A DNA stretch of 64,000 bases from Selaginella moellendorffii (lineage: Eukaryota; Plantae; Lycopodiophyta). The stretch's first letter is position 1. Every line of letters begins with the position of its first letter. Location of the stretch: assembly GCF_000143415.4 (NCBI RefSeq), contig NW_003314280.1:1612894-1676893 (forward strand), in the 5' to 3' direction. This document shows, in pieces, positions 2,495 to 52,400 of the stretch. The notes under the pieces were generated by a model, which saw only the letters and a program-made list of their open reading frames with translations, searched no databases and was not told the DNA's origin. The translations under genes were made by a program, and so were the position numbers.

Positions 2495-2497
2495 ACT

Positions 2498-20676: not shown

Positions 20677-22746
20677 GGCACTCAACAAGATCACAGTTAA
20701 AAACAGTTTTCCTTTATTTCACATTGATGACTTGTTTGACCAACTCTTAAAGGCTATGTATTTTACGTGACTTGATTTGCAGTTTGGGTATCATCAGATA
20801 TGGGTGGCAGATCAGGATGTGGAGAAGACAGCCTTTAAGACTCGGTACGGATCTTATGAGTTCCTTGTCATGCCGTTCGGGTTATGCAATGCTCCGGCAA
20901 CATTCAACACTATGATGGATAGAATATTTAGAGATTATTTGGACGCATTTGTTGTCCTATATATCGACGATGTTCTAGTCTTTAGTGAAACGTTGGAGGA
21001 TCATTTGAAACACTTGGAGCTGGTGTTTCAGAAGTTGCACAAACACAAACTGTATGCTAAGGAAGGTAAATGTGCTTTTGGTCAATTGCGCGTAAACTTT
21101 CTCAGACATATAGTTGGTGGTGGTGTGATTGAGGTCGATCCAAAGAAGGTGGAAGCGGTGAAGTCCTGGGAAGTCCCGACCACTATATCAGATGTTTGTT
21201 CCTTTTTCAGTTTGGCGGGATACTATCACAAGTTTGTCCGCAATTTTGCAAGAATTGCTCTTCCGTTGACTGAGTTGACGAAGAGTAGTATTCCATTTCA
21301 TAGGACACCAGCTTGTCAACGTGCTTTTGTACGGTTGAAGGAGATCTTGACTACGGTACCTATTCTCAGGATCCCAGATCTTGATAAACCCTTCGAAGTG
21401 CATTGTGATGCATTTGGCTATGCTATTGGTGCCGTGTTGCAGCAAGATTGTGACAAAGCGGTTGGTGTTACACTAAGGCAACATAGTTGTCCCGTTGCGT
21501 TCTATTCCAAGAAATTGGATGAAACTCAACAAAGATGGCCAACGCATGAGAAATAGATGTTTGCTATAGTGTCGGCCCTGGAACACTGGAGACACTACTT
21601 GGGTGGACATACCAAGGTTTATACAAATAGTAACACACTAAGCTACTTTGCTACGCAACTTAAGCTTACACCGAAGCAAGCTCGTTGGCAAGAGAAGCTT
21701 GCTAGATATGATATTGAAATCATATATAAACCTGGTAAAGACAATATTGTTTCGGATGCGTTGAGTCGTCAGGCTCAATTCCGGGCAATATCGGCAATCA
21801 GTTCGGACTGGTTGGAGGACATTCGGGCTTCCTATGGAGGTGATCCATTGGCGAAGGCAATCTTATGCCATACAGGGTTGTTGAAGTAGAGTCCTGGTAG
21901 CAAAACAGCGAAAGTTGCTAGTCGCACTAATGTGAAGCTTCACTTCTCAGTTCGGGATGGGCTTATATTCTATAAGCAAGAAAGATTGTATCTTCCCTCT
22001 AAGGATCTGCAATAGTTATTTCTGCAAGAACATCATGATGTTTCAGCAGCGGGATATGGTGGATAGCAAAAGACTCTGACTTCATTGAAAAAGGGATTTT
22101 TCTGGTCTGGTATGGAAGGTGATGTAGTGGACTATGTCCGTTCCTGCCCTGTATGCCAACAATGTAAGCGTAGAACTGAGAAGCAAGCTGGAAAGTTATA
22201 GTGCATTCCAGCACTGGCATGGCCATTTTAGAGTGTGACACTTGATTTCGCCGTTGGCTTGCCAAAATCTAAGGGTTTTGATACTTTGATGATGGTTGTG
22301 GATCGATTGTCAAAGATTGCACACTTCATTCCAACTATGGGAACAGTAAATGTGAAACAAACAGCAAAGCTCTTTTTCCATGAAGTAGTGCGGGTTCGTG
22401 GTCTTCCTAAAGAGATTATCTCGGATAGAGATTCAAGGTTTACGGGGAAGTTTTGGGGCACACTGTTCCAGCTGTTTAGTACCAAGTTGAAGTTTAGTAC
22501 GGCTTATCATCCTCAAACTGATGGGTAGACCGAACGTGTGAATGCTTAAGTTGAGGATTATCTGCAGTACTATGTTGCAACGGACCAACGTGACTGGGTT
22601 GAGCATTTGGATACAACAAAAATATGTTATAACAACACATTTCACAGCGCTATAGGCTATTCTCCATGGGAGATGCTGCAAGGAAATGCTCATGGGGTTC
22701 CTCAACAGATCGTTGTACCGAAACCAATGACCGAAGTGTTGGTCCC
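20677..22746 (+). pseudogene. C pol: RT (YIDD), RNase H, integrase core
   Basis: [66 protein letters not shown]; several premature stops. Confidence 0.92.
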
Positions 22747-22806
22747 TGTCAAGAATCCCCCAATTCTTGCCACATTCCTGACTCTCGCCGGATTCCTGAC
22801 CTGCAG
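22747..22806 (+). repeat. 60-bp stub of a family D LTR at the rearrangement breakpoint
   Basis: TGTCAAGAATCCCCCAATTC...CCTGCAG, preceded by target GTCCC. Confidence 0.85.
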
Positions 22807-24645
22807 GAAAGTGGTTGTGGTGGAGAACTGGCCTACACCAAGTACAGTGGCCGAGTTATGCAGTTTCCTTGAAATGGCTAGTTACTATTGATGTTTCCAG
22901 CATAAGTTTGCAGAGGTGGCTATTCCTTTGACAAAGTTGTTGTGCAAGAACATGCCATTTGAGTGGAAGAAGCCACAAGAGGAGAGTTTTGTGGCACTAA
23001 AACAATTGTTGAACGAAGCTCTAATGTTTCGCATTGTTGATCCATCAAAACCTTACGAGGTGACATGTGATGCAAGTGGTTATGCATTGGGAGGAGTTCT
23101 CATACAAGATGGACAGCCTATTGCATATGAGAGTCAAACTTTAAATCCCACGAAGCAATGCTATTCCACATATGAGCAAGAATTACTCTCTATTATTCAT
23201 ACTTTGTGGACATGGCAACACTATTTTTATGGTGTAGTGTTTGTGGTGTTGACAGATCACAAACCACTTGTGTATCTTTTCACATAGAAGGCGTTGAACA
23301 TTAGGCAAGCTTGTTGGATGGTCAAATTCATGGAGTTTAGGGAATTTCTTATTGAGCATCGTCCAGGAAAATCAAATGTGGTGGCGAATGTCAGGAATCC
23401 CCCAATTCTTGCCACATTCCTGACTCTCACCGGATTCCTGACCTGCAGACCACATTCCTGACTCTCGAGATACTTCCCTATTCCTGACTCTCGAGACACT
23501 TCCCTATTCCTGACTCTCGACTTCCCATACGATTCCTAAGTCTCGAGCCACATTCCTGATGATGATGTGGCGCCTCCTCAACCTCAACTATATTTGGGCC
23601 GTCCTCGATCCAAGAGTGGTGGAGCTTCATCAACCTATAGTATATATAGGTTAGCCTTGTTCCATTTCTCCACAATCTGAATCAACACCAGTCTAAGGCC
23701 TCTTCTTTGTTATTCATTAGCTTTTCTCTTGTCTTTTGCATTTTCCAGTCTTGATCTTGTTAGGGGTCTTGACAGCAAATGCTTTATCTTATGTTCATCA
23801 TGTGACGGTGTTATAAACATGGTTTTGTTATCATTTGAGTAAGGTGGTCAACAAGTTTGGGAAATTGGCTGCACAGCTCAAGCTCAGGATGCTGAGGTAG
23901 GCTCTTTGTGTGACCAGATGGAAGCCCCTTTCTCATTGGTGGATGGGATTCTCTATTATAATAGCCATGTATTTTTGCCATGGGTGGATGCGTTAATTAC
24001 TTAGGTTTTATTCCACTATCATGATTGTTCGGAGGCTAGTCATTTTGGGGGGAAGAAGATGTATGAGTTGATTAAGCGCAATTTTTATTCAAGGAATATA
24101 AAGGTTGATATCCTCAAGTATTGTAAATCATGCAAGCTCTGTCAGCGGGTTAAGATGCCACATAAGAAGTCAGGGGGACTTTTGCAACCTTTACCTATTC
24201 CTTAGAGCTGTTGGTGTAGTATCTCTATAGACTTCATCATTAGTTTGCCATGCACATAAAGGCAAAAGGAGCAAATATGGGTTATAATGGATCGGTTGAA
24301 GAAGTATGTGTGGTTGTTGGCTCTTCGAAAGATTATCACTACCCTAGACTTGGTTGCGGTCTACTTGGAGAAAGTTTTTTCTGATTTTGGTTTGCCAGAG
24401 GACATCATTAGTGATTGAGATTCAAAGTTCACAAATGAATTTTGGAAGAGCTTTGTGAAGGCTATGCAAGTGACTTTGAAACTCTCGAGTGGCAATCATC
24501 CTCAGATGAATAGGCAAACCGAGCATGTGAATCAGGTGGTGGAGGATATACCATATTGTAGCATTGGTCAAAGGCAAGGACAGTGAAATCTATTTCTTTC
24601 GTTGGTGTAATTTGCTTACAACAATAGTCAACACAATGGAACCAA
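22807..24645 (+). pseudogene. Family E pol: duplicated RT-end/RNase H segment and integrase, split by a solo D LTR
   Basis: 22805-23388 is an inverted copy of 49497-50080 (CDASGYALGGVL, TDHKPL). Decayed integrase motifs lie at 23775-24645. Confidence 0.85.
23389..23774 (+). repeat. Solo LTR of family D (386 bp)
   Basis: TGTCAGGAAT...TCTTGACA, TSD GCGAA/GCAAA, TATATATA at ~23641, 25-bp internal tandem repeats. Confidence 0.9.
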
Positions 24646-24649
24646 ATTA

Positions 24650-26380
24650 AGTGTTTTGATATTTTTATTAGGAATATGTTTAATTTCTCAATTGCATAAT
24701 GATGTCTTATATTCCACCTTAAGTAGGAGAATTATGGTAAGTGTGGAGAAAATATGTAATGAAAATTGAAAGTACCACCAACTATAAATGATCATTTGAA
24801 TCAATCCTCATAAAATAAAGAGATAGTTGTCAAGATGATGCTGAAAATGTAAATACTAAAATGACAAGTTATCAAAAAGTAATATAGAATTCTCAAAGCT
24901 ATCATAAAGCCTTTGAATCCATAACTCATCATTTAGCCTCCTAAACATCATTTAGAGGAAGTAAATCCACTTTTATATTTTATGGATATTAAAAATCAAG
25001 CATAAAAATCACCAATAGCACATAATCTTCATCTAAAAAATTCACTAACATTGGAACAATAGACTCCTTGGGAATATGAAGAGAGAGAAAAGAAGGGAAA
25101 TAAGTTCAAGATAAAGCATTAGTATCAATCATTGAACTCCCATAGTGATAACCAACCTTGGAGTTGTAGATTTGAAGCTTTAATACCCACTAAGTAGTAT
25201 ACCTAACTAAATTTTTTTGCTTCAATAATAAAGTAATTGCAATATGATTAGTCTTTAATAATATTTGAGAACCATGCAAGTACACATGAAATTTCTCAAA
25301 ACCCCAAACCACTCTATCCTAAAGTAGTTTATCTCAACTAACTGCAAAGTATAGTTGATGTATGCAATGGGATAATGTTGGTTAGAGCCATTCATACTCT
25401 TTTATATTAGCATGCCCCTAAGATCAATATTACAAGCATCTATGCACAAGATGAAAGGTTTAATGTAGTTAACAGATGCCAAATCTAATGGAGTCAACAC
25501 TTCTTCAAAATTTATATCTGTAAATTAGATGTAAAATAATATAAATAACTTTAACAACACTTCTATATTGCAATGCTTTCATAAAGATGATTAATAAAAA
25601 TTTAAGATATTACATTTTACCAAAGAAGCATTACACATCATTCATACACTTTTGTATAGAGAATTTTAGAATAGCCATAGTTTTGTTAAGATCAATAAAT
25701 AAACTCTTATGAGAAATGTGGTATCTAAAATAAATAGTATTAAATCCAAATATATATTTAGACTATTTCAGCTTCAAACTAATGTCCTATAGCTGATTTA
25801 ACACTTTACAAACATTATGATTTACTCCTCTTATATCCCCTTTGAATATAGGGCTTTTGATTAAGTAATTGGATTTTTTTCAGTTGATTTAAGAGGAGAG
25901 CATTAAATATGGTCAGAGAAAATGATATGGATTTGATTCCCATTGATTAGTGGCTATTTAAAATATAATATGCGCTTGAGCACTACCTTTAAAATTAAAA
26001 TAATATATATTAGGCATCCATGAATACAAGGAACTTTGTTCATTATCCATTAGAAAGTTCAAGAGCATTATTTAAATTGAATAATATACAAGGAATTTTT
26101 ATAAACTAAATAATATACAAAAGGCAATCTTATGGAATACCCACATCATTTAATGGATGATAATCAATGCAGAATTAGATATTTTTATCACAAGATGAAG
26201 TATACACACCAAACACTTTGTGATTTTTGGATAACACTATAATTAATAAAAGAGAATGATTTATATTTTTTCAATTAGTTAAGGGTTTTAAAATATATAG
26301 CATTAAGTGTTGTTGGGTTTGAATAGTATTGAGTTTGATGATAAACATCATTCTTTAATATCTTCTTGACATTTACTCAT
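24650..26380 (-). mobile_element. Highly decayed gypsy pol relic with a fragment of TRIM G (~25840-26030)
   Basis: AT-rich. 24840-25450 aligns by eye with 34490-35100, and 25930-25985 matches TRIM internal sequence 31420-31475. Confidence 0.55.
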
Positions 26381-26382
26381 AT

Positions 26383-28778
26383 TGTGAGGGCCAAGTGTAC
26401 GGCTACGATGCCATATACTAATATTAGCGTAGTGGGATTTTGATAACCGTCGGATTGGTTTCAATTTGGACCACTCGCTCCTGTATATAAACTAGGGTTT
26501 TTGGGCTAATTAATATGCACATTTTCTATATTCCCTTTCCATATTCCAAGCATTCACATTGGTGGAGATGAAGGGCACCTTTGATTGTCCCTGGGGAGTG
26601 CTTGGAGTTGGGATTTCAGTTTAGATCTAGCTTTTGCATCGTTTAGATCTAGCTTTTTCCATTTCCTTTCTTTTGTTCTTTCCTTTTAGGATTTTGGTTT
26701 AGATCTAGCTTTTTGCATTGTCTAGATCTACCATTTCCTTCTAGCTTTTTGTCGTTTATCTTCTTTTGCTCTTTTTTTTTCATTCGTCTCCATGGCAGAT
26801 CAACAATCTCCTCCTTTAACTCTGGAGTAGCAGTTGGTACAATTGCTTGATGCTATGCGCTTGCAATTGAACAACCAAACTCAGTTGATGGCGGCGTTCA
26901 CGGCACATGGTACAACTCCTCCTACTCTTGATGCCAATCCTTGCATTCGGCCGGAGTTCTTTTGTGGGAATCCTGGGGATGATATGTACCATTGGTTCGA
27001 TCACTTTACGGTGATTGCCACATATCATTCTTGGGATGATGCTCGACGTTTGCGTGAGTTTCCCACGTATCTCCAAGGGACGGCGTTGTAGTGGTACAAC
27101 GGTTTGGGAGCAGCCACTCGCGGGGATTGGAGTGTTCTTCCAGATGTCTTCAAACTCGCCTTTGGACATGCCGATGACTGTGATGATGCTTTCCAGCAAT
27201 TGCATCGTCTTTACCAAGGGCCATCTGAGTCGATGATGCAATGTGGTGTTCGTTTCTGAAGTCTTTTGCTTCGTGCGGTCAAGCTAGGAATGTTGTGGCC
27301 AGCACTTCGTCAAGATCTTGTCAGACTTGTGCATGCACTTGCTCCCACCACCTTTGACGATGCTCTTCGCTTGGCACAACGTTATGAGACGTCGCCTCTT
27401 CCACTTCTTGCTACACGTCTTTCAGCTCCACTTCCTGTGGGTGATGGTCTTGTTCCAATGGAGGTTGATGTTGCTGCTGCTCGAGTCCAAGGTCAAGGGC
27501 GAGGACGTGGTCATAGCCGTGATGTTTGCTGCTGGGCATGTGATGAAGTTGGTCATACTTATCGGTGTTGTCGGCGTTTTCCGGATTGGCGACCTCCATT
27601 TCCTGGGTGGAGACCTTGGCGTCAGCAACGTCCCGTTAGTGCTGCTGCAATAGAAGGTTTGAACACCGAGATGCATCCAGGAAACGAGGAGTCACGGAAG
27701 TAACAGAGGGACCTTGCACGAATAAGTCAGTGACCCCTCCATCTTTCTTTCGGGAGTATCATCAAGGGGTTCACTCGGCACCAGTTCATCCAGTGTTTAT
27801 TTTTCAAGCTTGTCTTTATAACAAAAGGTCTTCTATTATTCTCTCCGTGTTGGTTGATACAGGTTTGAGTTTATCTTCTATTGCTCGACTTGTTGCCACA
27901 CGTTGTCGTCTACACTTGCATCGTGCAGCGGAACCAATTTTCATTCTTTATGGCAACCGCTGTACACATGCATATGCACGGGATGAGGCGGACCTTGTTG
28001 TGCGTGTGGGCGATCTCGAGCTTGAGTTGCAGTCGTTAGAGGTGGTGCTGAGTCAAGCTTTTGACCTCATTCTTGGTATGGATTGGTTGCAGCGTAATCA
28101 TGCCAAGTGTGACTCTGAGGCTTCTCCCCCTTGTCTCATATTTCCTTATGTTTCATCCATTCCTCTCACTTCCATACCTCTTTGTCCCTCTACTTCTACC
28201 TCTGCTTCCATTACTTTTGTTTCCCCACTATTTCCTCCTATGTTTCCATCTTATTTTGCTCTTCCCTTTTCTGATCCCTCCGACGATATTTGTGTTGCAG
28301 TAGTTGACCGGCTCATGAAGGAGTATTCTGATCTCTTTGCCTTTGACTTATTGTCTGGAGCCAAGATTGCCACATGTCATCTGATTCCAACTAGGGATGC
28401 TCGTCCAATCAAGATTCCTGTTCGTCGTTGGTCATCAAAGGAGATCAAGATTTTACGTGCAAATGTCAAGGAGATGTTGGAGAAGAGTGTTATTCGGAAG
28501 TCGTGAAGTCCTTGGGCATGTGAACCTCATCTTATGACGAAGTTTGATGGGAGTATTCGTTTATGCATCGACTATCGTTCGTTAAACGAAGTAATGATCT
28601 TGGATGTGTACCCTCTTCCTCACACTGCTGATCTCTTGGATCGTTTGGGGCGAAGTCGTTAGTTCACCAAGCTAAATCTTGCTTCTGGGTACTGGCAAGT
28701 ACCAATGGCCGAAAAAGATATTCTTAAGACTGCCTTTCGTACACCATTTAGTTTGTATGAGTTCTTGGTGATGCCATT
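26383..28778 (+). mobile_element. Family F Ty3/gypsy element, 5' part (176-bp LTR, tRNA-Ala PBS, gag, PR, RT start)
   Basis: LTR TGTGA...TCACA at 26383-26558 and PBS TGGTGGAGATG at 26560. Gag runs from ATG 26792 with knuckle CWACDEVGHTYRCC; protease VLVDTG; RT truncated at FLVMPF. Confidence 0.85.
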
Positions 28779-31700
28779 TTGTCCACGCTGATCTCTCACA
28801 ACCTTTCTTCATTGAGGCTGATGCCTCCGACTTTGCCATTGGTGCTGTGCTGTCTTAACTCGGAGCAGATCAAGAATTTCATCCGGTCGCCTTCCATTCT
28901 CGGAAATTCCAGCCTGCGGAGATCAATTACAAAATCCACGATAAGGAGCTCCTTGCCATTGTGGATTCCTTTGGAGAGTGGCGTCGTTTCTTGGAGGGGG
29001 CAGGCCATCAAACAACGGTCTAGACGGATCACAAAAATCTCAAGTACTTTGCTACTTCCTGAGTTTTGAGCCGTCGTCAAGCAAGATGGGCACAATTCCT
29101 GAGTCGGTTTGACTTTGTTATCAAGTACAGACCTGGAAAGCTTCAAGGCCTTTCTAATGCTCTTTCAAGGCGCTCCTATCTCAGTCTCAGGCCTGGTAAT
29201 CCTGCCTTCGATCAACAAGATTAGGTTATCCTCGGTCCTAATTGGCTTCAAGTTATGGCAATTTCCTTAGCCCCTCAGGACTCTTCCTTGATAGATGCAA
29301 TCAAAAATGATCTTCAATCCGATGACCTCACCAGCGACATTTTCCCCCATCTTCAGGCTGGACACCCAGTGACTCCCGACTGCCGGCGATTTGATGAGTT
29401 TGAGTTCTTAGATGGCTTGTTGTACTGTGGGGAGCAACTTTATGTTCTTGAAGGTGATGCTCGAAGGTTGGTCTTGATGGCATGCCATGATAGCCTGACT
29501 GTTGGTCACTTTGCGAAAACCTATGAGTTGGTTGCACGGGACTTTTGGTGGCCTCACATGGATGACTACATCAAAGCTTTTGTTACCTCCTGTGACACTT
29601 GCACCTGGAATAAGGTACCTTGCCAAAGGCTGCCTTGAGTGTGTCAAAGGCCTGTTGGGCAGCAGTAGACCAAGAGAAGGGAACATCCTTGCGAGTGAGA
29701 TGCGTGAGAGGAAAGACAATGTTAGAGTAGTGATCAATGAATTTGCAGTAGAAGTTGGCAAAGCCAAGGAAAACCTGAATGTCCGATATTAATTGTGGAG
29801 GCTCCCATTCGAGAATAGTTTTAACTTTGGTAGGATCCATCATGATACCCTTAGGAGTGACAATGTACCCAAGGAATTCCACAGACTCCTGATCGAAGGA
29901 ACATTTCTCAAGCTTCGTGTAGAGGCTGTGTTCCCGCAGCTTCGCCAGCACCTTGCGTACATGTTCATCGTACTCCTCCTGAGTTTTCGAGTAGATGAGG
30001 ATGTCATCGAGGTAGACGATCACCATCTGATCAAGAAACTCCCAAAAGATGTTGTTTGCCATGTGTTGGAAAACTGCTGGAGCATTTGTCAAGCCAAACG
30101 GCATGACAGTGTACTTGAAGTGGCCATAGCGGGTTCGGAACGCAGTCTTCCATTCATCACCAGGCCGGATCCGGATCAAGTTGTATGCTCCACGGAGGTC
30201 GATCTTAGTGAAGAAGCGGGCACCGCCGAGGCATTCCAACAGGTCCAAGATCAGGGGCAGCGGATAACGGTTCCGAACAATCACCTTGTTCAAACCTCGG
30301 TAGTCAATGACTAGCCGCAAACTCCCATCCTTCTTCTTGACAAAGAAGACAGGCGCTCCAGCTGGGGACTGCGAATGCTGAATGTACCCCAAGGCAAGGT
30401 TCTCATCCACGTACTCTTTGAGGGCCTTAAGCTTGGATAGGGACAACCCGTAGATAGGCCCCCACGGAGGTGACGCTCCTTCTTGTAAATCAATGGGACA
30501 GTCATAAGGCCGATGAATAGGCAGTACACTAGCCTTTTTCTTGTCAAACACATCCTCAAAATCATGATACTTCTCAGGAAGACTGACAAGAGAAACATGC
30601 AAAGAAAAAAGGAAAATAGATTCTTCATGAAGGAGTTTTTTTATAGTGATTGTGGAGATAGGAGGAGGCGTACGACTAAATGGAATGATGAGATGAGGAT
30701 ACTATCCAGTGTAAGATGGAAAAGAGGAAAAAGAAGAGGGTGAAAACTTCGTAGAGTTAGGAATAGAACCCTGATTTGAGTTTAGGGAACTTTTCCTGAT
30801 TCGGACTCGGTGAGTAGTAGGGGAAGCTATGGGAGATGGTGACGTGGGAGAGATGAGTTGTAATTCCTTCAAACAGATCTGAGGCTGGTGTAGTTGGAAC
30901 CAAGGAAGGCTGAGCACCACAGAGGAGGACTTATTGTTGATGATGTTGAAGGTGATATTGGTGACGATGGACCCGATGTGTACTCAAACGGGCAACATTT
31001 TCCTAAGTCCAGAAGATGGAGACACAAAATGCCCATTGATGCCTTCAACCCTTAGATCCCGTATGGTAGGAGAAAGAGGAACGTGATGTCGGGCAGCAAA
31101 GTCTGTGTCCATGAAGTAGGAAGTTGCACCCGAGTCCAGTAGCGCCAGAGTCTTGAGTCCTGATTGTCTGGTGAAAGAAAGGAGACATGGGATGCGGGAA
31201 TTGGTGCTGGTTTTGATAAAAGATGGTGAGTGTAGCGCATGTGATCATGGGATGAGATTTGGATATACTGTCACCATGGATCCTTGAAACCTTGGGGGAT
31301 AAATGGGGATAAAATAGCCACTAAAGGCTCTCTCATCAAGCAATTGCCCCTTTTCTAGTTGGCTTAAGGGGAGAGAGATAAGATGCGCTACAGTTGGTAT
31401 CAAAGTAAATAGCACGGGTTCGATTCCCATTGATTAGTAGCTACTTAAAAATATAATATACCCTTGAGCAAGGTATACTCCTACCCCTAAAATTTGAAAT
31501 CGTACATATTGGGGATCCATGCATACGTCCTTCCTCTTGTGTGGAGTATCCACAGACAAAGGTATCCACTATGGGACTGCGTTACGGGTGGATGACTAGT
31601 TGCCTCACATGGAATAGCTAGTCTACACAATGGAAGGATTGGTAAATTCAGTGCAGAAATGGAGGTGTTGGTTCCCCTTGGCTCAGTAGGGGTTGTTAAT

Positions 31701-33750: not shown

Positions 33751-33759
33751 TAGTGAGGC

Positions 33760-38607: not shown

Positions 38608-38661
38608 TCCAAAGAGTCAAACTAATAAATTTTTTACAAAAGTTTTAATTAATAAGGAAAT

Positions 38662-39307: not shown

Positions 39308-41813
39308 ATGAGATGGAGTTTGAGATGGAGTTCAAGATGGATATGAGATGGAGTTCGAGATGGAGTCCAAGGAGTTTGAGATGGACCCGAGATGGAGTCT
39401 GAAATAAAGTCTAAGATAAAGTGAATATAAACTGACAAGCAGGGTAGGTTGGTGAAGTGTTCAAGAGTCAACTCTAGCTCCTCTAGGAGATCAAAAGGTC
39501 GATACTCCCAATCTGGGTGGCATTACTTACTTGGATACCTAGCATAGCTCAACAAAACCTTGCTTTAGCCCCATGGCTAGAGCACCCAAAGGCAGATGGT
39601 GGGGAGAGTACCTATGAAACCCATGTAGGGCCACGGTGTTTTGAAATGTTGTCTCAAAGTCCTAGACTAAGGAAAGAAAGAGGAGCAGTCCTCCTGTGTG
39701 GTGACCAAGGATGCAGTCATGTGGCAAGAAAGTCCTAGAAGCTGGTGGGGTATAGTGGTTGGGCCTATAGGCCTTAATCCAATAGTAGTGTTAGCGAACA
39801 TAGCCGTGGACAAAAAGGGACGTGGTAGGGACCAAAAAAGGGATATTAGGGAAGGCTATTCCATATATTTGTAGGCATCTAGAGGATGCTAAGGAGTGGA
39901 TCTAAAATGATCACTTATGGATTGACGACTTAGTTTTTGATAGATAGAATAATGATGTAGGTGGTGTTGGATCACTAATGTGACAAACATGGCATTAGCA
40001 TGACGGGTTGATATGTTAGTGGTACCTTTAGGTGTCGGTCATAGGATTAGACATGTGGAGCACTTGGACCAAGTGCAATGGTTGAGTGGCATGGATGCCA
40101 TTCTCGAGGCTAGTAAGTCCCTAAGTTCAGAATAAGATTTATAGATGTTGTGAGTGAGACTCCTCCAAATGGTCAGATGTGTGGTTAAGTGATTAAAGTA
40201 GAATGGAAAATTTAGTCTCTTACACAAACTTGGTGCCATTTGCATCAAAGTGGCACTGAGGACATGGTGAATGACACTTAATCTCAATTGCTATGGACTT
40301 TTGGCTGGAAGGGCTAGCTTGGGCACATCACAAAGTGTGGGGGATATTTCTGGGGTTGTCAATAACTTAGAGGTTTAATAGTCCTAGTGTTTATTGGTAA
40401 ACCTATTAAATTATTTATGTGGGATCACTAGGTGATATCATGATTGATAATCAAGGAAAAACTCCTTGGTGGGTTAAGGAATGGTGTTACTAGTTCAAAG
40501 TAGTGATTTAAATATAACACATAAGGGAAATAAGCTATGGTAATGCATTATAAGTCCAAGAAAGTAGTCTTTAAGAAAGGACCCATAGAATGGTCACAAC
40601 ATTGGTTGTGGATAAGGCCTATAACAAAAAATGTTAGGGAGACTTATTAGGGGTGAATACCCTCTGAACTTGACAAACTAGAGCCTTTGTTATAGAACTA
40701 AAAGGATATATCAAATATGGAGGTAGTGATCTTATGTTGCTTGGTACAACAGTTAAAGGATAAAAGCAAAAGACTAGTGGCCAAGAATGTACTAGAAGGA
40801 ATCTAAACAATAAATTAGACGAAGAACATTCATATAATGGATGCTAACGGATTGTGAGAAAGAAAATATATTTCCAAAGATGGATTTTTCAAATGCTCCA
40901 ATGTAGCAAAGGCAAAAGCTCAAAGAGATGGAGCAACAAGGTAGCGAAATAATAGAGCTATGAACAGCCCTAACACAAATTATAGAGAAATGGAACTTAA
41001 TGCCTAGGATAGCACGAAGTAAAAGAAAGGATGATAATGCCCTCAATTGAAGGACTTCCTAGGATGGGGAATTGGAATTTGCATAACATGTGTAATGCAA
41101 GATGTCGGAAACACCAAAAAAATTGACTCGAGAAATCAATATTATAATTCCAAAGTATAATAGTTATGTTGATGAAGGCTGGGACTACTCCGGAATGAAT
41201 AGTAATGTTGAGGTATGGCACCTCAATCCTTGTCGTCTTTGTGGCTCTGCTCATGTCATAAGCTCTCTCTCTCTCTCCATGCTCTAGCTCAAAATACAAA
41301 ATGTAGAACTCTTGATATTTCACCCTTGTAGGACTTTTATACAACCATTTGGATTATCCTAAGAATCAAAATATTCCCCTCTCTCTCCCTCTCTTAAGAT
41401 GCTCATAGCTGCAATTAGGGAGTAGGAGTGGGAGCAGGAGTGAGTAAGAGTAGGAGTAGGAGTAGAAGCGAGAGTAAAAGTAGGAGTAGATGGGGTGAGT
41501 CGAAGCCTATAGTTGCAATAATAAGATTGAGATAAAAAAAAGTGTCTCTAACAAGTTTGAGAACTAAATGAACAAAGGAAGAGAACTATCATATGTGATC
41601 TAATGAGACTCTAAGTTTAAGAAATTATGCTCCTTAGAGGATGGGAAATGCATATTGAGCCTTTACTATCGAGTCAATGACAAATATTGGCTTAGTGCTA
41701 AAGAAAATGGTAATCTATGATGGGGTTACTTTATGAAATGGTTTATTGTTTGATGAGGATATTGAACTTTGTCTATGGGTGGTAGGGTTATGAGACACAA
41801 ATCCCTAAGCCCC
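39308..41813 (+). mobile_element. Family A copy A2: partial 5' LTR (to 40224), internally deleted body, first ~24 nt of the 3' LTR
   Basis: Colinear with A1 except a ~2.7-kb deletion after the PBS. It ends ATCCCTAAGCCCC at the C insertion and carries a ~315-bp insertion at 41206-41519. Confidence 0.85.
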
Positions 41814-43909
41814 TGTAGCCCACCTGAATTTGGAGCTGAACTCCAAGCCCATTGCGCTATGAAACGAGGGTCCGGTACAATCCCACGAGCACTAGCTCCC
41901 CGTATCCAGCACCTGCACGCAAAATGGTATCAGACAGAGTCTGGCACAATTTTGGCATACCGGTGGCCTAACGCAAGGAGGAGGGTACTCCACCGACTAG
42001 AGCAGCGTGGAGCTTGAGCTTAGACCCCAGTCGGACGTAGAACAAGGAGCGACACAGCTCAGCGGGAGCCAAACTAATGTCTCAAGTGGTCGAACATGCA
42101 TTCCAACCACTATCCTTACTATACATTTGGAACCCCCCATAGCCCCCCCCCTCCCCTCGTGAGGGACACACACTTTGGGCTTTCACCCCAAGCCTCCCTT
42201 AGCACCAGGAGTTAGTCTCTGGGACAAGTCCAAAACTTACTAAATATGGAATGGCCTTAGATTGCAAATTTGGACACGGGACGAACACCATTGTGTTCAA
42301 GCCGATCTTTACATTCTGTAGATATGCCAAATGAGCGAATCTAGACACTTTCCATAAATAGCATTTGGGACCGAAATGAGACTAACACAAAGGGCGTGAT
42401 AGCGAGGGTGTTTGGCAGACACGGTAAACTATCATCCGGCAATATTGAGGGACTAGTCTCAATATGCGAGGGTTCTTGTCACTAGTCAGTGCAAGACATA
42501 ACAAGATGGGAACTCCTTACCGGGCTAAGTATGCTTAGCTAATAGCACGTAGGAATTCCGTCCTTATGCTCGTCCAGTCTAAGTACACTCAAAATGCCCA
42601 GTTAACTCCACTAGCACAAGAGGGGCTACTAAAGGGATCCAACTGTATCGACCTCCTGCCGTCATGGCCGTAAGGAAAGAGTGTCCGTAAGGACTGGTTG
42701 ACAAGTATCTTTCGATACCCGAAGTCACATTTGTGACACTCTGCCCCCCTTGGGGAAGATCAACGTCCTCGTCGATGTATACCTGAGTCTAGCAAACCGT
42801 CAAGGAAACAACCCCGAAAGTTAACGGAAAGCACACTATGTGGGAAACACACCGACTTAAATGAGTTATGGAACAACCTCTCCTCTACGTCCAAAGACAT
42901 TAAAACTCAAACACCCTCCGACCGTCGCCGACAAGGAATCAACTAATAGAGTTAGCCACCCTTGTTGCTCCAAGTACCACTCAGCTTACAAAGGAATGAT
43001 ACATCCCTGCCCGCAGAGACATAGGGAGAAGGCCAGAGGCCCAACTTCCCCTAAGCAAGAAATCAACCCCGTTGGGAACATTTGGACAACTACTATAAAC
43101 TGGCAGATTAAGTTGTTTACACAACCACGCCCCTTTGTCAAAAATGAGTCATCGAGAGAGAGGCGAGGACTTGTGATCAGTCTATAATAGTTATCCCCAT
43201 GGTTATGGATTGAACCCATGCACCGAAGTGCCGAAGTCAACCTGCCAAAACTGACCCAAGTACAAATGAACAAATGAAACGACACTTTGTTTGAAAGAAA
43301 TATATTGCTTTATTGATTTGCAAGATTTATTACAAGGTTTTTTTACAAAAACTAGTCTTTATTACTATTCTCATACTCCGTGACAAGTTTACGAGCATGT
43401 GTAAGATTCCTAAGAGGCTCCCAAGTTGATTCACAAGTTGGGTAACCTTTCCACTTAACTAGATATTCCTTCACACGAGCTCGTCTCTGGAATCGGGAAT
43501 CCAAGATAGCTTCCACTTCGTATTCTGGTTCACCGTCTACAACATCTGGTGGCGGACGAATCTCCCCTTGACGTGCAACATCAATGGTGTAAGGAGCCAA
43601 TAGATTGGCATGAAATACATTATGAATATTGGACATCTCCGCAAGCAGATCCAACCAATAGGATACATCCCCAATGCATTTGAGCACCCGATAAGGTTCA
43701 ACATATCTCGGCAAGAGCTTCCGAGACAAAGAACCCTTAATGTTCAAGTTTCGGGAAGATAGCCACACCTGATCTCCCACTTGATAGGATACATCCCGAC
43801 GATGCTGATCCTTATCACGTCGATACCTATCCTGAGCTTTGCCCATCGCCTTAGTAGCTCTAGACCAACCTTAGCATAGCTGCTCCATATAAGTTTCAAC
43901 TGCTGGGAC
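41814..43909 (-). mobile_element. Family C chromovirus, 3' half (integrase C-terminus, chromodomain, 3' UTR, 3' LTR 41814-42738)
   Basis: GPY/F-like module and chromodomain; PPT adjacent to 42739; LTR homologous to the 12200-12321 stub and to B LTRs. Confidence 0.9.
43352..43909 (-). pseudogene. C integrase C-terminus with group I chromodomain
   Basis: YQVGDQVWL...IHNVFHANLL...EYEVEAILDSR...YLVKWKGYPTCESTWEP; aromatic cage residues intact. Confidence 0.9.
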
Positions 43910-44306
43910 TGTCAAGACCCCCAACAAGATCAAGACTGGAAAATGTAAAAGACAAGAGAAAAGCTAGTGAATAACAAAGAAGAGGCCTTAGACTGGTGTT
44001 GATTCAAATTGTGGAGAAATGGAACAAGGCTAACCTATATATATTATAAGTTGATGAAGCTCCACCACTCTTGGATCAAGGACGGCCCAAATATAGTTGA
44101 GGTTGAGGAGGCACCACATCATCATCAGGAATGTGGCTCGAGACTCAGGAATCGTATGGGAAGTTGAGAGTCAAGAATAGGGAAGTGTCTTGAGAGTCAG
44201 GAATAGGGAAGTGTCTCGAGAGTCAGGAATGTGGTCTGCAGGTCAGGAATCCAGCGAGAGTCAGGAATGTGGCAAGAATTGGGGGATTCCTGACAGCACC
44301 CGCTCC

Positions 44307-47300
44307 TCAAGAACGAGTGGAACAAGGACGTGAATGAGAACGAGGAGAAGGATGAGATGGGCGGCGAGGGACGGGAGATGGAGAAAAAGAATGAGGACTG
44401 GGATGAGAAGGATAGTGGCGGTGGAAGTCCTGAACAAGGTTAGAAGAATGAATCAAGTTGTCCGTAAGTTCCCAAGTGCATTCTTCAGGTCCATAACCCT
44501 TCCAGTCGACCAGATAGTAGAGTTTAGACCGTGAGATCTTGGAATCAAGGATGTCCTGAACCTCGTACTCAGACCCATCCTCGAGCTTCACTGGTGGAGG
44601 CAGAGGAATGACCCAATTTGGAATAGGACTGGGAATATAAGGCTCAAGGAGGGAGGAGTGAAAAACGGGGTGAATTTGATATGAGGAGGGAAATGCAAGG
44701 CGATAAGTGACAGGATTAATGATGGCAGTGATAGGGAAAGGACCGAGGTGTTTGAAATCGAGTTTGGGACATGGCCTGGTGGTGGAGATATTTCGCCTGA
44801 GGAGCCAGACTTTATCCCCAATATTGTAAGGGGGACAATCCTGACGATGGACATTGGCAAATGTTTTGTGAGAGTCCTGAGCACGATGGAGGTGGAAGGA
44901 GATGGAGTTGTGGATTTCCTGGAGGTTGGAGATAAATGTCTCAGAGCAGGGATTAGAATGAGAGGATTCAGATGGAGAAGGAAGTGAGAGATTGAATCGG
45001 GGATTTCGGCCAGAGTTCGCAAAGAAGGGGGAAACACGAAGAGAGGAGTGAACAGAGTTGTAATAGGAGAATTCAGCAACGGGAAGGATATCGAACCACT
45101 CATTCTGATGATAGTTGATGAAGCACCTCAGGAATTTTTCCAACGTCTGAATCGTTTGCTCGGACTGTCCATCAGTTTGAGGATGATATGCCGAAGAGAG
45201 GTTGGCCTTCACTTCAAGCAGCTGCAGAAACCGTTGCCAGAAATGAGAGATGAACTGAGGTCCCCGATCCGAAACCACATCTACAAGAATCCCATGAAGT
45301 CGGAAAATTTCCCCAAATACCAGTTTTGCCATGTCCTCGCCCGAAAACTCCTTGGTACACGGCAGGAAGTGCGCCATCTTTGTGAAGCGATCCACCACGA
45401 CTAAAATGCTATTGAAGCCTCCAGAACTTGGGAGATCACTCAAGAAATCCATGGAGATGGATTCCCAAGGACTTGAAGGGACCGGGAGGGAACGAAGCAA
45501 ACTTGAAGGAAGGTGGCGAGGTACCTTATTTCGGGCGCAAGTGTCACAAGAGGTAACAAAAGCTTTGATGTAGTCATCCATGTGAGGCCACCAAAAGTCT
45601 CGTGCAACCAGCTCATAGGTTTTTGCAATGCCGAAGTGACTAACAGTCGGGCTATCATGGCACGCCATCAGGACCAACCGTCTAGCATCACCTTTAGGAA
45701 CATAAAGCTCCTCCCCACGGTACAACAAGCCATCTAAGAACTCGAACTCGTCAAATCTCCGGCAATCGGGAGTCACTGGGTGTCCAGCCTGAAGATGGGG
45801 GAAAATGTCGCTGGCGAGGTCATCCGATTGAAGATTGTTTCTGATCGCATCCATCAAGGAGGAGTCCTGAGGGGCCAAAGAAATTGCCATAACTTGAAGC
45901 CGATCAGGACCGAGGATAACTTGATCCTGTTGATCGAAGGCAGGATTACCAGGCTTGAGATTGAGATAGGAGTGCCTTGAAAGAGCATCAGGAAGGCCTT
46001 GAAGCTTTCCAGGTCTGTACTTGATAACAAAGTCAAACCGACTCAGGAATTGTGCCCACCTTGCTTGACGACGGCTCAAAACTCGAGAAGTGGCAAAGTA
46101 CTCGAGATTTTTGTGATCCGTCCAGACTGTTGTTTGATGGCCTGCCCCCTCCAAGAAACGGCGCCACTCTCCAAAAGAATCCACGATGGCAAGAAGCTCC
46201 TTGTCGTGGATTTCGTAATTGATCTCTACAGGCTGGAATTTCCGAGAATGGAAAGCGACCGGATGAAGTTCTTGATCCGCTCCGAGTTGAGACAGCACAG
46301 CACCGATGGCAAAGTTGGAGGCGTCAACCTCGATCAAGAAAGGTTGTGAGGGATCAGTGTGGATCAAGATGGGAGCAGAACTGAAGGCCGCCTTGAGTGT
46401 GTCGAAGGCCTGCTAGGCAACAGCAGACCAAGAGAAGGGAATATCCTTGCAAGTGAGATGCGTGAGAGGAAGGACAATGTCAGAGTAGTGATCAATGAAT
46501 TTGCGGTAGAAGTTGGCGAAGCCAAGGAAAACTTGAACGTTTGACATTGATTGTGGAGGCTCCCATTCGAGAATAGCCTTGACTTTGGCAGGATCCATCG
46601 TGATACCCTCAAAAGTGACAATGTACCCAAGGAACTCCACAGACTGCTAATTGAAGGAACATTTCTCAAGCTTCACGTATAGGCCGTGTTCTCGCAGCTT
46701 TGCCAGCACCTTGCGTACATGTTCATCGTACTCCTCCTGAGTTTTCGAGTAGATGAAGATGTCATCGAGGTAGACGATCACCATCTGATCAAGAAACTCC
46801 CAAAAGATGTCGTTTGCTATGTGTTGGAAAACTTCTAGAGCATTTGTCAAGCCAAACGGCATGACAGTATACTCGAAGTGGCCATAGCGGGTTCGGAACC
46901 CAGTCTTCCATTCATCACCAGGCCGGATGTGGATCAAGTTGTATGCTCCACGGAGGTCGATCTTAGTGAAGAAGCGGGCACCGCCAAGGCGTTCCAACAG
47001 GTCCGAGATCAGGGGCAGCGGATAACGGTTCCGAACAATCACCTTGTTCAAACCTCGGTAGTCGATGACTAGCCACAAACTCCCATCCTTCTTCTTGACA
47101 AAGAAGACAGGCGCTCCAACCGGGGACTGCAAATGCTGAATATACCCCAAGGCAAGGTTCTCATCCACGTAATCTTTGAGGGCCTGAAGCTTGGACGGGG
47201 ATAACCCGTAGATAGGCCCCCACGGAGGTGATGCTCCTTCCTGTAAATCAATGGGACAGTCATAAGGCCAATGAACAGGCAGTACACTAGCTTTTTTCTT

Positions 47301-48077
47301 GTCAAACACATCCCCAAAATCATGATACTTCTCAGGAAGACTGACAGGAGAAACATGCAAAGCAAAAAGGAAAATAGGGTCTTCATGAAGTTCTTTCATA
47401 GTGATTGTGGAGATAGGAAGAGGTGTACAACTAAATGGAATGATGAGATGAGGATACTGTCCAGTGTAAGATGGAAGAGAGGAAAAAGAAGAGGGTGAAA
47501 AATTTGTAGAGTCAGGAATAGATCCCCGATTTGAGTTTAGGGAACTTTTCCTGATTCGGACTCAATGAACAGCAGGGGAAGCCATGGAAGATGGTGATGT
47601 GGGAGAGACGAGCTGTAATTCCTTCCAACAGATCTGAGGCTGATGTAATTGGAACCAAGGGAGGCCAAGCACCACAGAGGAGGACTTGCTGTTGATGATG
47701 TTGAAGGCGATATCAGTGACGGTGGACCCGATCTGTACTCGAACGGGCAACGTTTCCCTAAGTCTAGAAGAGGGAGACACAAAATGCCCGCCAATACCTT
47801 CAACCCGCAGATCCCGTATGGTAGGAGAAAGAGGAACGTGATGTCGGGCAACAAAGTCCGTATCCATGAAGCAAGAAGTTGCACCTGAGTCTAGTAGCGC
47901 CAGAGCCTTGAGTCCTGATTGTCCGGTGAAAGAAAGGAGACATGGGACGCGGAAGTTGCGGGAATTGGTGGTGGCTTTGATGAAAGGTGGTGAGGAGCTT
48001 GATAAAGAAGAGAAGTGATTTTTATTCGGGGAGTCCAAACAGACAACTCCTACTCTGTTTGGACAGGGTCGTTTCCC
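44307..48077 (-). pseudogene. D1 pol (protease LLDSGAT, RT YLDD, RNase H, integrase, chromodomain)
   Basis: 686-aa open RH-INT-CHD frame at 44307-46367 plus RT 46647-47399 and PR 47562-48143; a few stops and frameshifts. Confidence 0.92.
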
Positions 48078-49021
48078 GACTGCAACAGAGGTGGACTTTG
48101 AGACAGAGTGAACTTGAGCAGTCGGGGAGGCTTCTTGGGACACACAGCTGCTTTGTGATTAGGATCAGCACAGTAGAGGCAAAGATTATGAGATATTCGA
48201 CATTGCTTCTCAGTAGGACTCAACTTCCCTCTAATGAGTCGGGGAGTACCAAAAATATCCATCGGGACCGGAGCAGTAGGTTTAGGAGTATGCCCTGAAG
48301 ACTCAAGCTGGGATTCCTGAGTCTGGGACAGGAAAACGGCGGCACGACGACTTTCCTGACGACGTTCAAAAAGACGATTGTCGCATCGAATAGTTTTGTT
48401 GATGGCATCCAACAAGTCCGTGGGATCCTCCATGGTGAGCAACAAATCCTTGACACTGTTGTTGAGGCCGAAACGAAATTGATCAATCAAGGCCCGCTCA
48501 TCCCACTAAGTGTCCAAGGCAAGGAGTTGAAACTCTGCAGCATAGATCGAGGCAGGACGAGACCCTTGAGAGAGATGTCTCATCTTTGTGGTGGCAGCCC
48601 GAACCCGATCCGTCTCGCCAAAACATGCTTCGAGCTTCTCTTTGAACAATTGAAGATCCATCAGCTCCGGAACCACGACCCCTTTCATGCTCTTCTCCAG
48701 GAGAGGAGAAAACCATGACAAAGCTACACCTTCGAGCAACGTCCCAATCGCACTGATTTGAGACTCGCGAGTGGGGTACTGCTGATGTTGAAGTGCGAAG
48801 ATCAGCTCCATCTGGTTTAGGAATCCACGAAGCTCCGAACGCTTCCCTGAAAATTTCACCGGGAAACTCACCTTCGGTTTAGGAACTTTGCTAGATCCTT
48901 GAACCAAAAGTGAAGCAAGCTCCTGCTGCATGCGAAGAAGGGTCACCTTCAGCTCGGTATTCTCAGACTGGATTTTTGCAAGGACTTCAGCAAAGAAATC
49001 AGGATGGCTTGGAGAATCCAT
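48050..49021 (-). pseudogene. D1 gag (PEG10/sushi-like capsid, CCHC knuckle CLYCADPNHKAAVC)
   Basis: ATG at 49021 (MDSPSHPDFF), one premature TAG at 48506, ends SGNDPVQTE. Confidence 0.88.
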
Positions 49022-49496
49022 TGGAAAAGAAGAAAGAAAAAAGGGGGAAAAAATGCAAAGGCAATCAAACAATCAAAACGAGCTAAAGCAAAAAACGAAA
49101 AAGCACAATCTGAATCAAATTGTCAAGACCCCCAACAAGATCAAGACTGGAAAATGCAAAAGACAAGAGAAAAGCTAGTGAAGAGGCCTTAGACTGGTGT
49201 TGATTCAGATTGTGGAGAAATGGAACAAGCCTAACCTATATATACTATAGGTTGATGAAGCTCCACCACTTTTGGATCGAGGACGGCCCAAATATAGTTG
49301 AGGTTGAGGAGGCGCCATATCATCATCAGGAATGTGGCTCGAGACTCAAGAATCGTATGGGAAGTCGAGAGTCAGGAATAGGGAAGTGTCTCGAGAGTCA
49401 AGAATAGGGAAGTATCTCGAGAGTTAGGAATGTGGTCTGCAGGTCAGGAATCCGGTGAGAGTCAGGAATGTGGCAAGAATTGGGGGATTCCTGACA

Positions 49497-52400
49497 TTCG
49501 CCACCACATTTGATTTTCCTGGACGATGCTTAATAAGAAATTCCCCAAACTCCATGAATTTGACCATCCAACGAGCTTGCCTAATGTTCAATGCCTTCTA
49601 TGTGAAAAGATACACAAGTGGTTTGTGATCTGTCAACACCACAAACACTACACCATAAAAATAGTGGTGCCATGTCTGCAAAGCATGAATAATAGAGAGT
49701 AATTCTTGCTCATATATGGAATAGCATTGCTTCGCGGGATTTAAAGTTTGACTCTCATATGTAATAGGTTGTCCGTCTTGTGTGAGAACTCCTCCCAATG
49801 CATAACCACTTGCATCACATATCACCTCATAAGGTTTTGATGGATTAACAATGCGAAACATTAGAGCTTCGTTCAACAATTGTTTTAGTGCCACAAAACT
49901 CTCCTCTTGTGGCTTCTTCCACTCAAATGGCACGTTCTTGCACAACAACTATGTCAAAGGAATAGCCACCTCTGCAAACTTATGCTAGAAACATCAATAG
50001 TAACTAGCCATTTCAAGGAAACTGCATAACTCGGCCACTGTACTTGGTGTAGGCCAGTTCTCCACCACAACCACTTTCCTTAGATCCATCTTGACACCCT
50101 TAGATGTCACAATATGGCCTAGATATTCCACCTCCAACTTTGCAAATTCACATTTGCTCTTCTTCGCATAAAATTTGCTGTCAAGGAGTAACAAAAGAAC
50201 TTTGCACAAATGCATCTTATGCTCCTCCATATTCTTGCTGAAAACAAGAATATTGTCCAAGAAAATCTCCATAAACTTATGAAGATAATGCCTAAATACC
50301 TCCATCATCAACTGAGTAAATGTGCCTGGTGCATTCATCAAACCAAACAGCATAATTGTAAACTCAAAATGCCCAAAGTTTGTGTTGAATGCCGTCTTGG
50401 AGATAGATGCATAATCCATTACAATCTGATGATATCCACTCCTCAGATCAATCTTAGTAAACACTCATGCTTCACCAAGCTTGTCTAAGATATCATCCAT
50501 ATGTGGCATCGGTATCTTATCTTTCACTATCTTTTTGTTCAAGGCATGGTAGTCAATACACATCCGCATTGAACTGTCCTTCTTCTTCACAAGCAAGACT
50601 GGAGCACCAAATGAAGACTTACTTGGCTAAATAAATCCAAACTCCTTGACTTGTCGTTGAAGTTCTTGCTCCTCCGCATAACTTAATCGAAATGGATGCC
50701 AGTAAATTGGCCACGTCCCCAGCTCCAACATAATCCCATGCTCTACACCTCGTAATGGAGGCAACCCATGAGAAAGTTTAAATGGAAAAACATTGGAAAA
50801 CTCGTCGAGTACATCCCATATTGTTGCTTCTCCCCCACACGTGCCTTGGTCCCCCAAGTCACAAATAAATAGCAAGTAACACAAAAATGCTTTTTCATTA
50901 CGACAAGCCCGCTTCAAAGATGTAGCGGAGAGCATAACAACTGGAGGTTGAACTCCCTCTCCAAAGCACACATCTTTAATGCCATTGTACTCCAATGAGA
51001 CATGCTTAATATTCCACTTGATCTCCGGATCCACCTTTACTAACCATGGCATCCCAAGAATGAAATCCATGTGATAGATATCCGTGAGATAAAAAGTCTC
51101 CACAAGTGTGGTTTTACCAACCAACACTTCCAACCCCTTTACACAAGCATCGAAATGCTAAGCAGAGGTAACTGCACCTTCCACTGTATATGGAGGAACT
51201 CTGCATATGACTAGGCCATGCTCCGCAACAAACTTTGCTGAAACGAAGTTGTCATCACTCCCACTATCCAATAAAATCCGCACTAGATCGCCACGAAATA
51301 CACTCTCCATCATTAAAGCTGATTCACGAGTATCCTCGAGCTCCATCTTGTTCCACACACAGTTGAGCTAACAAGCAACGATCAAAAGCCTCTTCCTCCG
51401 ACCGGAATAGTTGTCCCCATCATCTTCACGTTGCAAAGTTTACAACTTTTTAGTATCTGATTTACCATCAATAGAAGATTGGCTATTCTTTTTGCTCTGT
51501 TGCTTGTTCTTCAACTGTGGACAATCAGCCTTATAGTGTCTAAGCTCGCCGCAATGATAACAACCCTATCTATAATTCTTCACAAAGAACTTCTACTTGT
51601 TTGACCCCTTTACATCTGAAGTAGTCACTACAGACTTCAACTTATGGTGCTTATTCCCATCTTTGTGTCCATGGCAATCATCACAATGATTCTTAACAGA
51701 AGGACTCCGTGAATGCTTGCAAGACTTGTGCTTGTCCTTGTTAAGTCGACGAGCTACATCAAAGAGCTCCTTCAAACTCTTTATAGGCTGAGAATGATGC
51801 AAATGTTGCCGCATGCTCTCACTATGAAGGCCATCAATGAAGTAGGACTTGTTTTGATCTGGATCCTTTGTTGGAACATGGCTAACCAAGCGAGTAAACT
51901 TCTTAATATAGTCTCTGAGCGTTATTTTCCCTTGCTAGAAATGCCAAAGTTCTATATGAGCATTTTCCATGTCGTAGTGAGGGGCAAAACATAAATGGAA
52001 AGCAATCTCAAACTCATCCATGGTAGACACTAGTGGTTTCTTATCTGCAATACAAAACTCTTCAAGTCAATTCCACCACTGCAAACCTGCATCACGCAAA
52101 ACCATTGAAATAGCCACTAAAGCCTTTGCATTTAGAGTTCAGCCAAGAACTTCTTCACATTGGCTAGCCAAGCGAGACACTTGGCCACACCACCATCACT
52201 AGAAAAGGTTAGAATCTTGAGTTGATTTATCAAGGAAGGTTTACTTAGAGCGCTACCACGTCCAACCTCGAGTGCCTCAACACGTTCATGCATGGTATCC
52301 ACCATGCCATGCATCTTGTTTTGCATCTCTTGCTGATTTTGATTAAGGGCTTGCAGCTCATGAACAACATCTTGAATGGTCCAAATTTCTACAACTTTGT

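Follow-up and report, generated by a model that had tools for sequence, protein, structure and literature searches.

An inversion of about 25 kb in a nest of Ty3/gypsy retrotransposons of Selaginella moellendorffii, with an inverted duplication at one end

Introduction

Inversions can arise by ectopic recombination between inverted long terminal repeats (LTRs), in which case the exchange lies in register within the repeats and no sequence is gained or lost; such events can be told from elements whose target-site duplications do not match between the two sides. Other inversions carry duplicated sequence at their ends: in Drosophila this was found for 17 of 29 inversions, the duplications measuring 46 bp to ~1.9 kb and being often one-sided, and the staggered-break model was put forward for repeat-free breakpoints of this kind that are joined by non-homologous end joining (Ranz et al. 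2007, PMC1885836). Templated filler or patch insertions are also made by synthesis-dependent strand annealing during double-strand-break repair, repair-mediated duplication being one example (PMC2671141). Here we describe an inversion of ~25 kb in the lycophyte Selaginella moellendorffii that lies within nested Ty3/gypsy retrotransposons, with a junction in register inside an LTR at one end and a junction of 2-nucleotide (nt) microhomology next to copied sequence at the other. It is contained in a window of 64,000 nt (contig NW_003314280.1, positions 1,612,894 to 1,676,893, assembly GCF_000143415.4), and a search of the literature turned up no account of it. An earlier reading of the letters of this window, hereafter the original prediction, had proposed the inversion and called it proven.

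The structural reading covers this one assembled window, and the structure is known from this single assembly; the window has no Ns and ~44% G+C. Repeats and element copies were identified by comparing the window with itself (self-BLAST), domains were called on the element pieces with Pfam, and two sequences served as independent rulers: the intact open reading frame (ORF) of 686 amino acids (aa) of element D1, and element A1. Colinearity was tested by comparing the pieces one by one with these rulers and by coordinate arithmetic, with no flipped or joined element sequence being built. Four LTRs of the D family (La, Lb, Lc and Ld) and a 60-nt LTR stub (L60) were aligned in sense orientation.

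Results

Four retrotransposons lie in two pieces on opposite strands

Self-BLAST, the protein rulers and Pfam resolve the window into a nest of Ty3/gypsy elements, four of which (A2, C, D1 and E) each lie in two pieces on opposite strands, with break coordinates that abut on the independent rulers. From left to right, the pieces and the short duplications beside them are the following:

11582-12194, minus strand: left piece of A2, a fragment of its 3' LTR, antisense relative to A1 (865-1493 and 6611-7172 match 12200-11581, minus, in the self-BLAST)
12195-12199, plus strand: GGGGC, left copy of the target-site duplication of C (the homologous site of A1 reads GAGGC)
12200-22746, plus strand: 5' part of C, a Ty3/gypsy chromovirus, with LTR nt 1-122, protease, reverse transcriptase (RT), RNaseH and integrase core
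22742-22746, plus strand: GTCCC, left copy of the target-site duplication at the boundary of C and the D LTR (reverse complement at 43905-43909)
22747-22806, plus strand: L60, the first 60 nt of a D LTR in sense orientation, interpreted as a remaining stub of the D1 5' LTR
22807-23388, plus strand: left copy of E-mid, the RT end and RNaseH of E (Pfam RT_RNaseH_2)
23389-23774, plus strand: La, a complete D LTR in solo-LTR position inside E, flanked by GCGAA and GCAAA
23775-24690, plus strand: 3' part of E, integrase H2C2 and core (Pfam Integrase_H2C2 at 24005-24202)
39310-41808, plus strand: right piece of A2, its internal region with ~30 nt from the start of its 3' LTR, collinear with A1
41809-41813, minus strand: right copy of the target-site duplication of C, GCCCC on plus and GGGGC on minus
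41814-43909, minus strand: 3' part of C, with SH3-like integrase domain, chromodomain and 3' LTR (41814-42738) (Pfam SH3_Tf2-1, Chromo)
43910-44295, minus strand: Lb, the 3' LTR of D1, preceded by GGGAC (43905-43909)
44296-49120, minus strand: internal region of D1, with gag, protease and RT, then the 686-aa RNaseH-integrase-chromodomain ORF
49121-49496, minus strand: Lc, the LTR in the present 5' position of D1, with a 10-bp deletion
49497-50080, minus strand: right copy of E-mid, continuous with the rest of E
50081-52745, minus strand: 5' part of E, with a short LTR, gag with zinc knuckle, protease and RT

A2 was placed on the A1 ruler, where segments 1660-2501, 5268-6273 and 6440-6614 correspond, in plus orientation, to 39406-41811. 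The left flank of A2 reads ..cagctccacttt followed by GGGGC, the same as A1 6611-6640, and with one A2 flank read on each strand, the two meet on A1 with no gap (..ccactttGAGGCttagggatt..). The target-site duplication GGGGC of C reappears as GCCCC beyond its 3' part, and the GTCCC before L60 has its reverse complement GGGAC before Lb; these swapped duplications, already named in the original prediction, are read directly from the sequence. The same holds for the integrase frame of C, which stops with ..MTEVLV(P) at 22746 on the plus strand and picks up with VPAVETYM.. at 43909 on the minus strand. On the D1 ORF, the left piece of C covers aa 5-448 (21377-22669, plus), which extrapolates to ~aa 473 at 22746, and the right piece covers aa 473-649 (43906-43370, minus). 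Pfam finds RVP_2, RVT_1, RT_RNaseH and rve on the left piece, with SH3_Tf2-1 and Chromo following on the right piece, and the start of the 3' LTR of C matches 12200-12321 at 91.8%.

D1 belongs to a family of 5.6-kb chromoviruses with a 387-bp TG..CA LTR. Its coding frames place D1 (43910-49496) on the minus strand, so that Lc stands where a 5' LTR belongs, with Lb as the 3' LTR. The domain order RT, RNaseH, H2C2 integrase, SH3-like domain and chromodomain is found both in D1 (44310-46367, minus) and over the two C pieces (Pfam). E is an older gypsy element riddled with stops, which reads gag, protease, RT and RNaseH from ~52745 to 49497 on the minus strand; its conserved motif ..GKSNVVA|NALS.. 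carries on, across La, into integrase from 23775 on the plus strand, and the GCGAA that flanks La is also found on the E side of Lc (reverse complement of 49497-49501).

The flip x -> 72895-x of 23775-49120 puts the internal region of D1, Lb, the 3' part of C and the internal region of A2 in order and in the same orientation after 23774, and sets the 3' part of E beside 49121. The claim that this flip restores all four elements at once holds, by arithmetic, for order and orientation, but not for full restoration: after the virtual flip, C is still broken by the 60-nt LTR stub and a 582-bp copy of E, besides D1, and E remains truncated. Altogether, a single inversion with ends in 22747-23774 and 49121-50080 fits every test run and is supported, and ruler coordinates, domains and strands bear out the predicted splitting of A2, C, D1 and E by an inversion of ~25 kb. 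This inversion is real and old, and comprises ~25.3 kb of unique sequence (27.3 kb with repeats).

Two independent truncated copies of E were also considered and rejected: the copies are complementary and overlap by exactly the duplicated tract, and they have stop codons and the solo LTR with its duplication in common. A 3' LTR of E was sought in the window and none was found; the 3' part of E ends near 24690, so E is truncated. The search for an LTR pair of E in the window gave only a U3-like match of 127-135 bp between 52617-52743 (minus) and 26385-26511 (plus), which belongs to another element, G.

The left end carries an inverted copy of sequence from the right end

In the self-BLAST, 22805-23774 matches 50080-49121 in minus orientation at 95.98% over 970 bp. 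The copies differ by 29 substitutions, 26 of them transitions, and by one 10-bp indel (39 differing columns); 20 of the substitutions are in the 584 bp of the E-mid portion (compared with 49497-50080), and the other 9, together with the indel, are in the LTR portion (23389-23774 and 49496-49121). The original prediction had counted about a dozen differences, which is wrong, and its argument that the divergence of the duplicates speaks against misassembly is strengthened by the actual number, which makes it unlikely that the assembly collapsed or mirrored a repeat. The E-mid copies at 22807-23388 and 49497-50078 are 3.4% divergent and have stop codons in common, and no further E-mid copy was found in the window by self-BLAST.

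At the left junction, nt 60 of a D LTR is joined to E over two nucleotides, AG at 22805-22806, that are common to the LTR (..CTGCAG) and to E (..CTAAG|GAAAGTGG, reverse complement of 50072-50084); this join can be read directly and is as predicted. The sequence duplicated there consists of 582 bp of E and the LTR start. On the right, a stop-free frame of E (49997-50464) crosses 50080/50081 and matches RVT_1 positions 69-205, so that the right copy is the intact donor.

Another stop-free frame, of 114 aa (22550-22891, plus), begins in the C integrase, crosses the 60-nt LTR stub and ends in the E RT copy; it is a chance in-frame chimera over both left junctions.

LTR variants suggest a shorter duplicated tract and a mosaic LTR

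Derived states common to La and Lc, as judged against Lb and Ld, occur at nt 41, 83, 105 and 122 only, with none downstream, and 7 of the 8 changes private to Lb are at nt 123-387. This split ([4,1] vs [0,7]) gives a Fisher p of 0.010, in a post hoc comparison of few sites. L60 has the ancestral G at nt 41, as do Lb and Ld, and shows 2 differences in 60 nt from either neighbouring LTR. These variants suggest that the duplicated tract is made of E-mid and LTR nt 1 to ~122, thus ~706 bp with a Kimura two-parameter (K2P) divergence of 0.032, and that over the other 265 bp (K2P 0.028) La and Lc may be independent D LTRs. In the simplest reading, Lc would be a mosaic with solo-LTR sequence outside (nt 1 to ~122) and the own 5' LTR of D1 inside, the variants placing the exchange point only as 3' of nt 122. 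The predicted inverted duplication of ~970 bp is thus a real match, but the truly duplicated tract may be limited to these ~706 bp.

A proposed history with one double-strand break would account for both ends

Clean recombination between the inverted LTRs could account for the inversion and the swapping of duplications, but it leaves the LTR stub and the E copy unexplained; a fuller mechanism is therefore proposed. We consider it probable that a break in the 5' LTR of D1 was repaired on the inverted solo D LTR in E, with one end out of register. This history is supported as the most economical, since a single double-strand break, followed by out-of-register capture of the second end and a crossover, yields the two junctions together with the duplication and an E frame that stays open across 50080/50081. 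It also retains the mechanism of the original prediction, homology at one end and AG joining at the other, with which the LTR variant states and nt 41 of L60 agree.

In the ancestral order, C would have carried D1 in its integrase in the same orientation, followed by the rest of A2, the germin-like gene described below, other elements and E, the latter in opposite orientation and with a solo D LTR between RNaseH and integrase. A double-strand break would have occurred in the D1 5' LTR, ~60 nt inward of its outer edge. On the D1 side, the end would have lost at least 62 nt, and its 3' terminus would have used homology to invade the solo LTR, which lay in inverted orientation, and been extended outward through LTR nt ~122-1 into E. 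The second end, made of C and LTR nt 1-60, would have captured the displaced strand at AG, 584 bp inside E and 644 nt out of register, and been extended back through E-mid into the LTR, so that the tract between the two entry points would be copied on both products. Resolution as a crossover would then flip the interval, giving a left product C-L60-E-mid-LTR-E 3' part and a right product C 3' part-Lb-D1 internal-Lc-E-mid-E 5' part, with a donor E that would be seamless at 50080/50081, as is seen. Alternatively, a non-crossover outcome would give the templated insertion only, and a later crossover between the new inverted repeats would lead to the same end state; one step and two steps would leave the same sequence and are not separable by it. 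That the whole structure came from a single repair event, with invasion by homology, out-of-register capture at 2 nt of microhomology and crossover, is a tentative proposal. The structure itself, the split elements, the swapped duplications and the intact donor are observed. We infer the position of the break, the repair pathway, the number of steps, the order of events and whether D1 was first in C or in E, and for these the word "proven" in the original prediction was too strong.

Several points weigh against the repair of a D1 5'-LTR break on the solo LTR. A one-step origin is made less certain by the rarity of mitotic crossovers in plants. A microhomology of 2 nt is expected by chance in ~1 in 16 joins and says little about which end-joining pathway acted, and the 114-aa junction frame had no match in the protein database. 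The case for the mosaic is built on 12 variable sites that were split post hoc, and nt 179, which groups La with Lb, conflicts with it. Last, La and Lc are the closest pair of LTRs (9 substitutions and the indel, compared with 15 and 18 substitutions to Lb), which would also fit an insertion of D1 into E before the event.

If that was the case, D1 would have been first in E, with GCGAA/GCAAA as its target-site duplication and with Lc and most of La as its LTR pair, and the solo D LTR would have been in C, with GTCCC. An exchange between the D1 3' LTR and this solo LTR would have caused the inversion, and the filler of E-mid and LTR start would have been copied from the flank of the D1 5' LTR. 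Both sets of target-site duplications fit this order equally well, as does the closeness of La and Lc, and over nt 123-386 the La and Lc branches are about equal (3 and 4 changes) with Lb as the outlier at 7. However, this order needs an extra template switch, from the 5'-LTR flank to the 3' LTR, or at least two events, to bring E-mid next to La without the internal region of D1. It also makes the clustering at nt 41-122 of the four derived sites common to La and Lc a coincidence (p ~0.01) and, if these four sites arose in Lc after insertion, leaves too little time, since La and Lc have diverged no further over nt 123-386 (0.028) than have the two copies of the duplicated tract (0.032). We thus regard a first insertion of D1 into E as unlikely.

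Staggered breaks with end joining are still less probable in our view. Such a scheme would combine one break in the D1 LTR with a pair staggered by at least 644 nt in E and its solo LTR, followed by fill-in and non-homologous joining; the left junction has only 2 nt of microhomology, and the outcome resembles that of the Drosophila inversions. Yet the right junction is in register, and solo-type sequence extends in Lc to at least nt 122, past the break at nt 60, which argues for homology-driven repair; moreover, 3-4 coordinated nicks or breaks would be needed instead of one. An assembly artefact, in which only a templated insertion of 644-706 bp would be real and the assembler would have flipped the 25 kb between the 970-bp inverted repeats, is very improbable: such a flip keeps all internal read overlaps, and nt 179 groups La with the D1 3' LTR as if La were the own 5' LTR of D1, but the copies differ once per 25-30 bp, so that reads and clone-end pairs should phase them to their flanks, and the window is free of Ns.

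The relative ages of the elements are compatible with the repair of a D1 5'-LTR break on the solo LTR. K2P divergence is 0.088 between the C LTRs, 0.045 for the D1 LTR pair (nt 123-386), 0.032-0.036 for the duplicated tract and 0.007 between the LTRs of the young element B, giving an apparent order of C LTRs > D1 pair >= duplicated tract > B LTRs. The published S. moellendorffii assembly holds both haplotypes, with allelic cDNAs that are a few bases apart (PMC3095285). Since allelic genes of this species differ by far less than 3%, the event would be older than the two haplotypes and probably predates their split, with the caveat that methylated transposon DNA mutates faster than genes.

A germin-like gene was carried along by the inversion

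The clear host genes of the window are only a germin-like ORF and cytochrome P450 copies near its right end. As predicted, the first of these was carried along, its ORF being within the flipped interval:

37954-38607, plus strand: germin-like protein gene, an intact single ORF of 217 aa (37954-38604) inside the inverted interval

The distance from this gene to the ends of the inversion is 5 kb on one side and 14 kb on the other. Its product is assigned to Cupin_1/Cupin_2, and its best matches, its own entry excluded, are four S. moellendorffii paralogues with 92, 88, 83 and 70% identity. Box B reads HPRVFA, compared with HPRASE in Selaginella paralogues (HPRSSE and HPRGTE in two of them). The Glu of the cupin His-His-Glu...His metal site, which is kept in all 5 aligned paralogues, is absent from this ORF, and a nearby conserved Arg is a Cys. 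Judging from these residues, the gene may be an inactive copy or one with a changed function. The inversion cuts no gene; it reoriented the germin-like gene, the sole gene that it carries, and its transposon neighbourhood, and has no evident function.

Other elements and rearrangements in the window

The remaining retrotransposon features that were delimited are:

1-845 and 8333-11581: B-like element, split by A1 (846-8332)
13403-20676: young element B inside the 5' part of C, with LTRs that differ at 8 of 1143 sites
33032-33418: Ld, the LTR of D2 and the fourth D LTR copy (self-BLAST)

Despite its near-identical LTRs, B has no ORF of at least 110 aa in its internal region, and is thus young and apparently non-autonomous or heavily interrupted. 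In C, the 5' LTR is reduced to nt 1-122 and protease coding starts ~300 bp further on (12200-12640); an internal deletion took the rest of this LTR and gag. The short LTRs of G (26385-26560, plus) and E (52600-52745, minus) have ~135 bp of U3 in common, including a TATA-like box, and then diverge, so that G and E seem to represent families that are related and whose LTRs are very short. Where the E integrase stops (~24690), the minus strand carries, at 24713-24796, part of the N-terminus of an H-like integrase, and the next 1.7 kb (within 24682-26384) has ~32% G+C and is 68% similar to 34328-35128.

D2 shows a second, small inversion of the repair type within the large one. An RNaseH/integrase piece of 852 bp (28774-29625, plus) lies inverted beside the remainder of the element (29626-33418, minus); on the D1 ruler the two parts abut at 46372 and 46384, with 11 nt lost, and they are equally diverged from D1 (K2P 0.0905 and 0.0877). 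At its other end the piece runs into the RT (MPF motif) of G, the two being joined over a 7/8 match to CCATYTTG. Adjoining the retrotransposon nest, the two P450 copies (54222-57110, plus, and 61468-64000, minus, the right one running off the window) are convergent, with 87-93% nucleotide identity, and constitute an inverted gene duplication.

Discussion

The biological consequence of the inversion is probably small: should it be polymorphic, recombination would be suppressed locally. The locus is a lycophyte example in which nested retrotransposons record a rearrangement base by base, with four independent elements that date and orient the event. Its hybrid signature, homology at one end and microhomology with copying at the other, bears on the debate over whether staggered breaks are required for inversions whose ends are duplicated. 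If a single-event route were true and general, it would offer a one-break alternative to staggered breaks for one-sided inverted duplications, and would link repeat-mediated inversions with those described as "repeat-free". The case is resolved at the base level and is a useful example that would not surprise a specialist.

Inversions by ectopic LTR-LTR recombination are resembled in three respects: inverted D LTRs stand at both ends of the flipped interval, the flanks are exchanged so that D1 is now between GGGAC and the GCGAA of E, and one junction is in register inside the LTR. In contrast to such inversions, the other junction lies outside the repeat, where the 60-nt stub is fused to E 584 bp from the LTR, and ~0.65-0.7 kb were duplicated, which departs from an exchange in register without gain. 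Templated filler insertions, which occur in vertebrate as well as plant genomes, are similar in that a break is filled with a copy of sequence from another place on the chromosome, the donor being left intact and the far junction showing a short microhomology. Ordinary filler made by synthesis-dependent strand annealing, however, is a non-crossover product that keeps the order of sequences, whereas here the interval between donor and break is inverted.

Like the Drosophila inversions of Ranz et al. (2007), this one has an inverted duplication of formerly unique sequence, which is one-sided here and of a size within the reported range; unlike them, it has one junction that uses 265-387 bp of LTR homology and a conversion-like tract. 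As for the elements themselves, C and D1 have the RT-RNaseH-integrase order and C-terminal chromodomain of Ty3/gypsy chromoviruses, but all copies here are defective or truncated, and E is without a chromodomain because its 3' end is missing. Altogether, the finding belongs to known kinds, repeat-mediated inversion and repair-templated duplication, and its junction signature is hybrid.

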